Below are positions 37,741-40,700 of a DNA stretch of 64,000 bases, piece by piece (position 1 is the stretch's first letter; each line of letters starts with the position of its first letter). Origin of the DNA: Zootoca vivipara (Eukaryota). The translations under genes were made by a program, and so were the position numbers. Below the pieces are notes generated by a model, which searched no databases, was not told the origin of the DNA, and was given only the letters and a program-made list of their open reading frames with translations. The stretch lies in contig NC_083277.1 of assembly GCF_963506605.1 (NCBI RefSeq), forward strand, positions 95,356,001-95,420,000. Direction: 5' to 3'.

Positions 37741-40700
37741 ATGGTGGCGAGGTGCTGCGGCCGCCGGGCCTTGGTGGTGGCGGTGCCTCCCGGGGCGCTC
37801 TGCCTAGGCGCGGCGCTCAGCGGGCTCTTCAGCTTCGGCTTCTTGGCCGCGGCCCTGGGCACCGATTACTGGTACCTGGTGAGCGTGGACTCGGCCAACA
37901 GCAGCGCTTGGGACGCCGAGCAGCTGAGTTCCCACTCCGGACTCTGGCGCCTCTGCGAAGGTAGGGCTGCGGCGGCGCGCGCGCCTTCTTTCCTCGGGTT
38001 CGCCACGGGAACACGGCGCGCTTCCCTTGGCACTGGGATCCGGAGAAGAAAGGGCTCTTTCTGGGATCCAAAATGGGTCCCGTCGGGGGTCGAGCGCCCC
38101 GCCCCCCCCCACAAAAACCGGACCTGCCGGTTTCAGCAGTCGTGAAAAAACTTTCTGCTGACAGAGGAATTGCCGTCGGGTCACAATATGAATCCCTTGG
38201 TGGTGAGTAGTTGTGGCAGCCGGCATTCCTCTGCCCTACTCAAGTCTTTGTGTCCTGGGGACGTCTTGATTCTGCTTCACCTGTTTGTTTAGGAAGATAG
38301 GACGCTGCATTACTAGTCCGCCTAGGTCAGTATTGCCAACACTGGCCGGCAGCAGCTCTCGAGGTTTTCTCACGGAGTTCTCTCACCGTCGTCCCTGGAG
38401 ATGCCGTGGATTGATCCTGGGACCATCTGCATGCAAAGCATGCCCTTTCCCAAGCCCCTGCTCTCCTACCCACCTGGGCTGTCCGGACGCTCACCTGCAA
38501 CTAGTTGTACTCCCTGGTTTGTGTATACATTTGGGGGTGGGGTGGGGAGAAGGGATCCCAGTGCCTTATAATCGCAGTATCCTGGTAGTACAGGTATAAG
38601 GTTAAGGCCAGCTGGAATTGTTCCATCTCCTTTTGCTAGCGATCGAAGAATTTCAGCCCTCCCGGTGGTGCTTTAACCTCCACGGATTTCCACGCATTTA
38701 TTACTTTCTGTGCTGGGGCCGATGGTGGCCCGAGGGAAGAGATTAAAGGAGGAGGAGTCTGAGAAAGAACTGGTTTGGAGACAAGAACCCGCCCTTCTGG
38801 AGAGAAAAGAGGGCTGGGGTGTCAGAAGAGAGACCCTATTGCACTTCCATCAAAGATATGAAATGTCAGCATGTCAAGGGACGCGTCGAATGTTCGTTTT
38901 CACACTCTGGTGCCCAGCAGGAGTTTTGACACCCCTGCACCTCTGCCTCTGGGCTCATGTGGATATGCCCCCTGCTAAATCACAGCCCGGGGGGGGGGGT
39001 GGAGTAGAGCCTGCTGCTGTCCTCTGAGCTCTGCTCTCTCGGAGGTCGCTCCCACGCCACTGTTTATTGAGCAGCCATCCTGATTTGTTTGCGGGAGTCC
39101 TCGAATCAAGCCGTTGTTATTCCACATTTTCCTGTGTACGGACGTAGCCGGGGGGCGGGGCAGCTGCCCTCCCCCAAATCAAGTAAATATATAAAAATAC
39201 TTAACTAACTGACCAACTGCGTCGCTGATAACGCGGTTCTTGCCCCACCCCACCCCACATAAAGCCCGCCCCCAATAAATCCTGGCTACTACCCCCCCCA
39301 AAGGGAACTATAGTTCGTTTATGGGGCTGGGAATATGTGGCTTCGTAGGAGAAAAGTAAAGTTCCTGGGATTCTTGCGCAGGTGTGTGTGTGTCATGTGA
39401 TTTAAATGTATGGTGTTGATTTGCCCTAAAATTGCACAGGCTGAATTGGTTGGCATGTGATTTGAATCCGAGGCACAAATAGCAATAGCCTAGAAGTACG
39501 TTTACTACAACCATACAGCTGAGGTTGGAATTTTCCTCTCTGTCAAGTTCAATTTCTGCCATTCTCAGGCTGTTTGGTTCTGGGATTTTGGAACCTTTTG
39601 GGTCAGCGGAATCCTCCACTGTGCATGAACACCAGTTTGCCCTATTGGAAGGAAAGGGTGGGTTCAAAGTCCTCCAGACCTTTAGAGCGAGGGCTCACAA
39701 ACAAGTGTATCTGAAGAAGTGTGCATGCACACGAAAGCTCATACAAAAATAAAAACTTAGTTGGTCTTTAAGGTGCTACTGAATGAATTTTTTTATTTTG
39801 CTTCGACTCAGACCATTATTATTATTATTATTATTATTATTATTATTATTATTATTATTATTACCAACACGGCTACCTACCTGTAAATGGTCTGTAAGAT
39901 TCATTCAGGTTGCCCATTCATATTGGTCTTTGACTGCATCTTTATTGCCTCTTTTTCTTATACTGTAGGCATTTTATTGTATTGCAACCTGAACTCGTAG
40001 ACATAGAAGATGCAATATCTTTTTTAAAAAAAATTAAAATTAAAAACCATACAGCGCAACACATTGCAATTGCTTAAACAGGCAGAAAAATAATCATGTG
40101 CTGTGCGAAGACCATCAGAAATTTTCAAGTTGCTAGTTCCGCCCCACACCTGAAGAGTGCACCTCTGGGGCCAGCCACTTCCTAGCCCAAGTTCTTACTC
40201 CTCCATTGCCAAAAAGTGATAATTCAGGTACCTTGGATGGATGCAAAACAGAGAGGGGAATCAAGGAGCTACTGTCAATTCAATTCAATTCAAACATTTA
40301 TTGTGTTAGCATACAGCCATAGCAAAATAAAACAATACAAAATGCCAGAGACAAGCAACAGAGCATAATTCAAGGTGACATTGCTGGTGTAATAACATTT
40401 AAATTACCCTAAGACAATAATGCAAAGATTTAGGTGCCAGCACCAAAAATCTAATATGCAGATATATGTAGAGCATAAAATAGCCCAAAATAGGCTCGGC
40501 ACGTTCAGTTTAAAATGAAATAGAGAGAATTAAAACAGGTCCAGGTCTAGGACACACTATCCTGTCCGGGTAGCCCTGAGTTTCAGGGCCTGCACTGTGA
40601 AGATTGCCACCCCACGTGTAATTAGGGGATTTGCGTCCACAAGAAGCAATTTCAAACAGACTTCCTTAGATGTAATGGGGTCACGAAGAGTCGGACACGA

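Follow-up and report, generated by a model that had tools for sequence, protein, structure and literature searches.

A 64,000-nucleotide stretch of contig NC_083277.1 of Zootoca vivipara, referred to here over its full length as the window, contains a claudin-like gene of four exons, and the first intron of this gene carries, in the sense orientation, a short repeat with a minimal hammerhead ribozyme motif at positions 39706 to 39745. Further copies of the same repeat family are present elsewhere in the window, and one of them, at 44930, also occupies the last intron of this gene in the sense orientation. The coordinates of the elements of the motif, of the repeat copies and of the exons are collected in Table 1.

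Table 1. Elements of the hammerhead motif, copies of the hammerhead-bearing repeat family and parts of the claudin-like host gene, in window coordinates
Feature	Position	Strand	Description
Helix I	39706-39710 paired with 39741-39745	+	5 bp
C3 to A9 (CUGAAGA)	39711-39717	+	Core box 1
Extra unpaired A after A9	39718	+	Between A9 and G10.1
Helix II, GUGUG/CACAC, loop CAUG	39719-39723 paired with 39728-39732	+	5 bp; 39719-39732 is a perfect 14-nt palindrome
G12 to A14	39733-39735	+	GAAA box is 39733-39736
Palindrome AGCU (A15.1, G15.2, C16.2, U16.1), in place of helix III	39736-39739	+	
C17	39740	+	Predicted cut 3' of 39740
Copy under study, subfamily A	~39700-39886	+	Hammerhead, ~70-nt spacer with GUUGGUCU box and T-rich run, then 35-nt tail ending ...CCTACCTGTAA
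5' border of copy under study	~39700-39707	+	Word-depth jump in DNA contigs
(ATT)n microsatellite inside tail of copy under study	39817-39862	+	Absent from every other copy in the window
Fold-back, subfamily A	3322-3544		Antisense arm 3322-3443 with full tail; sense arm 3444-3544 ends at ttttgc, tail-less
Intact hammerhead core in sense arm of the 3322-3544 fold-back	3455-3484	+	
Target duplication of the 3322-3544 fold-back	3310-3321 and 3545-3556		12 bp
5'-truncated tail-only copy, subfamily A	6326-6413	-	Without hammerhead; 8-bp target duplication 6318-6325/6414-6421
Subfamily B copy	21229-21362	-	Starts at core A6; without C3-G5 and the helix I 5' strand
Target duplication of the 21229-21362 copy	21217-21228 and 21363-21374		12 bp
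Fold-back, subfamily B	23020-23193		Antisense arm tailed; sense arm tail-less, core inactivated (A9T, extra A to T, G12A)
Target duplication of the 23020-23193 fold-back	23007-23019 and 23194-23206		13 bp
Subfamily B copy	44930-45042	+	Starts at GAAAGCTC; without first core box and helix II
Exon 1 (coding part) of claudin-like gene	37741-37960	+	Open reading frame; signal/transmembrane segment with motif DYWY...GLWRLCEG
Intron 1 of claudin-like gene	37961-42310	+	
Further exons of claudin-like gene	42311-42391, 43634-43771, 45569-45801	+	Open reading frames, AG/GT at all borders

The 40 bases of the motif read tgtat-CTGAAGA-a-gtgtgcatgcacac-GAAA-gc-TC-ataca and constitute a complete minimal type I hammerhead. 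Every position of the conserved core (C3 U4 G5 A6 N7 G8 A9, G12 A13 A14, and A15.1-U16.1) is canonical, with C as H17, and the topology is that of type I, with a helix I of 4 to 5 bp and a helix II closed by G10.1-C11.1. A descriptor of the minimal hammerhead ribozyme (min-HHR), in which a helix I of at least 4 bp and the core, with or without one extra base, are combined with a helix II closed by a G-C pair, the GAAA box, a palindromic loop, and UH, matched exactly two sites when both strands of the window were searched, namely, the copy under study and the copy at 3455, and gave no match in 100 shuffled sequences; the pattern CTGANGA-N8-30-GAAAGCTC was expected 0.03 times in the window and was seen twice. 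The two intact matches are copies of one repeat and so represent a single independent event. A chance origin of the motif was considered and is rejected on the pattern expectation and the shuffles. An earlier note on this DNA, made from the letters alone, had described an intact hammerhead at this place with a predicted cut after 39740, and that description is borne out.

The 30-nt core recurs identically at 3455-3484, close to position 3451 where the earlier note had placed an identical core without remarking that this second core is caged in a fold-back hairpin, and diverged versions of the 30-mer occur at 21336-21365 on the reverse strand and at 23106-23135 on the forward strand. The A at 39745 and the T at 39784 are substitutions private to the 39706 copy, nearly all family reads having C and G at these positions, and the fifth pair of helix I therefore exists in this copy alone; the 5-bp stem I described previously holds for the copy under study, whereas helix I has 4 bp in the family majority. 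Both intact copies carry ag immediately 5' of the motif (ag/tgtat), and the ATG in hammerhead loop II opens a frame of nine codons, followed by a stop (39725-39751).

Six insertion events of the hammerhead family fall within the window, all of them solo or fold-back copies and none in tandem. The broken or partial members that had been noted at 6326, 21229, 23018, and 44932 were located as listed in Table 1, and alignment of the window copies confirmed the two subfamilies proposed for them, A with ggtctTtaagg and B with ggtctCtaagg; identity is 93 to 100% inside a subfamily and 81 to 89% between subfamilies. The insertions are characterized by variable 5' truncation, by inverted partial copies, and by the lack of a poly(A) end. 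Target duplications of 8 to 13 bp flank four of them, and none was found on searching at the 39706 and 44930 copies. In copies without the microsatellite of the copy under study, approximately 110 nt separate the cut site from the 3' end. The copy under study contains no open reading frame (ORF), and it is judged to be young on the basis of 3 mismatches in 98 positions against the 3455 copy (96.9% identity) and of its two differences from the read majority; we consider that its hammerhead is probably intact because the copy is young.

The two fold-backs are built in the same way. The antisense arm reaches the full 3' end in both (...CAGACCAACACGGCTACCTACCTGTAAC; the tail is also given as ending ...CCTGTAAC); the sense arm falls 35 nt short of that end and breaks off within the T-rich run, where it abuts the target duplication. 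Taken with their duplications (3310-3556 and 23007-23206), these structures look like the footprint of two reverse transcription start sites used on two DNA strands.

The abundance and expression of the family were assessed by mapping reads on 37500-43499 at 90% likeness, the material being three RNA runs (raw reads) and the contigs of a DNA-like run from another study. Contig word depth rose from 4.6 at 39500-39699 to 571,479 at 39700-39899, by our figure approximately 1.6 × 10^5 times the single-copy flank and not to be equated with copy number, and the 5' border of the insertion is set at this jump. The depth points to roughly 10^5 family copies as an order of magnitude; scaling up six insertions per 64 kb gives a comparable figure, in agreement with the very many genomic copies that the earlier note had deduced from the same density.

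RNA from the family was plentiful, the repeat bin at 39700-39899 having a depth of 180 to 1,270 per direction across the three runs, on both strands, contributed by other copies. The exons and the unique intron sequence of the claudin-like gene had zero RNA depth in the same runs, and exon-exon joints of the gene were absent from them, the gene being silent there. No piled read starts or ends were found at the predicted cut (39740/39741) among the approximately 2,900 family reads that cross 39745 in run X21, so that under about one-fifth of the X21 reads can end at this site. Family reads in the 39700-39899 bin showed a 4.2:1 direction bias in run X21 (1,274 versus 303), compared with approximately 1.1 to 1.3:1 for two other high-copy repeats in that run, and a T insertion after 39787 was present in 421 of 3,996 reads of this run; the bias and the insertion point to a small number of highly expressed copies at other places in the genome.

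In the RNA and contig runs, strand-switch joints ran between 39707-39716 and 39708-39775, which shows that fold-backs with their hinge at the hammerhead occur commonly throughout the genome. Many family copies across the genome begin or switch strand at the 5' boundary of the hammerhead (39707-39716) and not at the predicted cut after 39740, and copies that begin exactly at this boundary hint at a defined end of the template RNA or at a preferred strand-switch point. The copy starts at the 5' edge (39700-39716) recall the Penelope intron of D. virilis, the 3' end of which abuts helix I (PMC4209133).

Folding was predicted for the motif alone and in context. The isolated 40-mer is predicted to fold into helices I and II at -8.4 kcal/mol, and when flanks are added, these two helices of the 39706 copy retain predicted pair probabilities of 0.2 to 0.98 in most folding windows and vanish at ±100 nt. 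In the 3455 copy, the helices are predicted to be lost (p = 0.00) once at least 20 nt of flank is added, because the inverted partner arm of its fold-back cages the hammerhead and sequesters it.

Min-HHRs were described in the terminal repeats of metazoan Penelope-like elements (PLEs) by Cervera and De la Pena in 2014, with reptiles among the animals mentioned (PMC4209133). The non-descriptor hallmarks given in that study, namely, a base between 9 and 10.1, G10.1-C11.1, a palindromic 15.2-16.2, and a short helix I, are all four present at 39706-39745. The likeness extends to the core (CUGANGA, GAAA, and UH), to a helix I without a tertiary-contact loop, to a helix III made up of A15.1-U16.1 and a palindromic GC, and to the arrangement of the copies: the metazoan motifs occur solo and also as close pairs on opposite strands, and the copies here are mostly solo, with opposite-strand pairs at 3322-3544 and 23020-23193. 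The motif differs in its helix II, which has 5 bp and a CAUG loop where PMC4209133 stresses 6 to 8 bp, and in that cleavage here is a prediction. On these hallmarks, its earlier classification as a Penelope-like minimal type I hammerhead stands. A search of the literature for the literal sequence gave no match.

The insertion footprints can be set beside those of Poseidon_Ac (PAc), a PLE of Anolis carolinensis described in Mobile DNA in 2024, which has two adjacent internal reverse transcription start sites around an optional tail of 30 to 40 bp and in which both DNA strands are cleaved and extended (PMC11167929). In PAc, as here, the hammerhead lies shortly upstream of the start of reverse transcription, an optional tail (35 nt in the present family) lies between the two start sites, and no RNA-seq ends occur at the cut site; priming of both DNA strands would account for fold-backs, and fold-backs in which only one of the arms bears the tail, as found in the window, are a prediction of the PAc mechanism. 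The sequences of the two families are, by eye, unrelated, and whereas the PAc ORF starts inside helix II, the frame opened by the loop II ATG here stops after nine codons and T-rich noncoding sequence follows downstream, so that lizard PLE families are not alike in the layout of the sequence that follows the ribozyme. The Poseidon_Ac consensus in the supplement of PMC11167929 was considered as the parent element and was ruled out as belonging to a different family.

Animal non-long-terminal-repeat retrozymes are short ORF-less type I hammerhead units related to the terminal repeats (pLTRs) of PLEs (PMC7229834; bioRxiv 10.64898/2026.07.22.740005). The family in the window resembles them as an ORF-less type I hammerhead unit, and solo "monomer" copies, often intronic, are common among retrozymes too; retrozymes are, however, defined by tandem arrays that give rise to circular RNAs, whereas the window copies are solo or fold-back, with none in tandem. 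HH9 and HH10, the intronic hammerheads of amniotes, are single-copy sequences that are conserved across species, are active as monomers, and possess a real helix III. The 39706 motif shares with them the type I fold and the sense orientation in an intron but is a member of a high-copy repeat, has a helix III of 1 bp, and is without an Rfam match.

We conclude that the sequence at 39700-39886 is a young, ORF-less 3'-end fragment of a very abundant Penelope-type family, in which the hammerhead has been kept by descent. The hallmarks of the min-HHR, together with the truncation, the 8- to 13-bp duplications, the tail, the fold-backs, and the lack of poly(A), indicate a PLE origin, and on the strength of this architecture and of the literature, the family would descend from a PLE encoding a reverse transcriptase and GIY-YIG. 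Within the parent element, the motif would process transcripts from tandem or pLTR-flanked copies, acting as a dimer via the palindromic helix III and probably with the element's own protein. The insertion would have arisen through target-primed reverse transcription that began at the tail and switched strands close to the hammerhead. The lone intronic copy would most likely be catalytically silent or nearly so, since its helix III amounts to only 1 bp, and we infer that the hammerhead at the 39706 locus is inactive. Nothing suggests that the hammerhead is used by the host. We regard this joint account, in which the motif processes parent transcripts, new copies are inserted by target-primed reverse transcription from the tail, and nothing measurable happens at the locus, as very probable.

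Several observations weigh against this account. A parental reverse transcriptase or GIY-YIG ORF is absent from the 64-kb window, and two metagenome pattern scans for longer copies with an ORF gave no match. The Rfam hammerhead models (types I, II, and III, HH9, and HH10) did not match, either at the gathering score or at an E value of ≤10 on 251 nt or on 62 nt, and the hammerhead region does not vary between the two subfamilies, so that there is no covariation to support the helices. The read-end test is coarse, since it registers a site only where at least one-fifth of the depth starts or ends at a single base; the 39706 locus itself was not sampled as RNA, the host gene being unexpressed in the three runs. 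The discrete 5' end at the edge of the hammerhead, moreover, does not follow from simple random truncation. The missing Rfam match, in our reading, reflects a limitation of models that rely on a helix III hairpin and is no evidence against the motif; of the two kinds of search that the earlier note had named as a check, by hammerhead model and by motif, the former was negative and the latter, in the form of our descriptor, recovered the two intact sites.

The lack of a linked reverse transcriptase or GIY-YIG ORF in the window, and the many copies with a common, discrete 5' end at the hammerhead, as in a short unit-length element, would also suit a family that is the tail of some other retroposon, such as a short or long interspersed element (SINE or LINE), or a self-standing nonautonomous element carrying a hammerhead, and hammerheads do occur in SINE-like elements and retrozymes as well. 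Such an origin is very unlikely in our estimation: the min-HHR subtype, the optional 35-nt tail, the fold-back pairs, and the variable truncation fit PLEs, the copies have no poly(A) or simple-repeat end, and animal retrozymes are themselves derived from the terminal repeats of PLEs according to a 2026 preprint (bioRxiv 10.64898/2026.07.22.740005). The readings that give the hammerhead an effect on host transcripts differ in how the intronic copy would come to be cut. In the proposal of the earlier note, a concentration-dependent switch acting in trans, a sense intronic copy is cut only through AGCU pairing between two copies, and cleavage of the host pre-mRNA depends on the concentration of family RNA. 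The abundance of the family, its transcription on both strands at the depths given above, and the palindromic helix III are in keeping with this proposal, as is dimeric cleavage, the accepted model for PLE hammerheads (PMC4209133 and PMC6765202). An AGCU/AGCU helix III between copies, however, has 4 bp and an estimated energy of -2.5 to -3.9 kcal/mol, corresponding to a millimolar affinity, and the 14-nt helix II palindrome pairs far better, the predicted energy of helix II pairing between two copies being -25.2 kcal/mol versus 2 × -4.1 kcal/mol (-8.2 kcal/mol). (RNAcofold cannot represent a kissing-type helix III dimer and gave the helix II-swapped duplex; the energy of helix III was estimated separately.) In the modeled duplex, the two cores would come to lie at opposite ends, without a helix III being built. 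Single motifs showed no cleavage in the published work, and dimers and trimers were weakly active, mostly at unphysiological Mg2+ concentrations (PMC4209133); approximately 44% of Xenopus retrozyme copies are intronic, with mild depletion only (bioRxiv 10.64898/2026.07.22.740005); and read ends did not pile up at the predicted cut, within the coarseness of that test. The sequence near 44934 that had been taken for a second half-site in the same pre-mRNA does belong to a second copy, without a hammerhead, in the last intron of the gene, but it confers no specificity, as every other AGCU in the transcriptome would do equally well. We therefore do not retain the switch, which appears extremely improbable.

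A lone copy might instead be cut at a low level in cis with the help of a PLE protein or an RNA chaperone, which would lead to some cleavage of host introns where the parent element is expressed. The Anolis hammerhead cleaves only with the protein of its element, independently of the nuclease site of that protein (PMC11167929), and in the 39706 copy the core is intact and helices I and II are predicted in most contexts. On the other side, the same study saw no RNA-seq ends at the Anolis cut site in vivo, no ends pile up in the reads analyzed here, and the sequence of the family differs from that of the tested Anolis element; assisted cleavage of this kind seems to us unlikely. We would give only a slim chance to its extension, in which sense intronic mini-copies are cut by protein-assisted hammerhead activity whenever the parent PLE protein is expressed, so that bursts of the element damage or tune many host pre-mRNAs.

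The kind of hammerhead, the insertion footprints, and the likely dimeric mode of action have been in the literature since 2014, and the 39706 copy, as a fragment of a PLE family, is one more copy of such a repeat. What the window offers is a clean signature of PLE insertion, in the form of fold-backs that lie within a target duplication and have a tail on one arm only. The finding would gain weight only with a demonstration that host introns are cut in vivo by intact sense copies.

The host gene was defined by ORFs, splice signals, and collinear Pfam matches, no exon-exon joint being available from the RNA runs. Its four exons total 672 nt in frame, and Pfam Claudin_2 matches were collinear in three exons that were searched singly (profile positions 2-43, 85-132, and 133-192). 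Upstream lies a survivin-like first-exon ORF, in which Pfam found no BIR domain and a regular expression for the BIR zinc site gave no match, the domain being split by introns. Downstream, Beta_elim_lyase ORFs at 50993-54245 on the reverse strand (profile positions 1-35 and 63-99) indicate a putative threonine-aldolase-like gene. The human neighborhood, which we take to be BIRC5-TMEM235-THA1P, is the basis for the name TMEM235. TMEM235 would be a four-exon gene for a claudin-like protein of approximately 223 aa, flanked by BIRC5 and a threonine-aldolase gene, and the gene described here, with a survivin-like exon on one side and a threonine-aldolase-like gene on the other, fits this description; the name thus derives from presumed synteny. 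The earlier placement of the hammerhead in the sense orientation in TMEM235 intron 1 is in accord with this structure.

Intron 1 contains other repeats. A long microsatellite, which would translate as poly-Leu in one frame, occupies 41798-41884, and read mapping skipped both this run and 39817-39862 as repeats. Two other very high-copy repeats, at 40500-40900 and 41100-41300, had contig word depths of 1.3 × 10^5 to 9.5 × 10^5 and RNA depths of 100 to 2,000 on both strands, with many joints of the "goes back" and skipping types.

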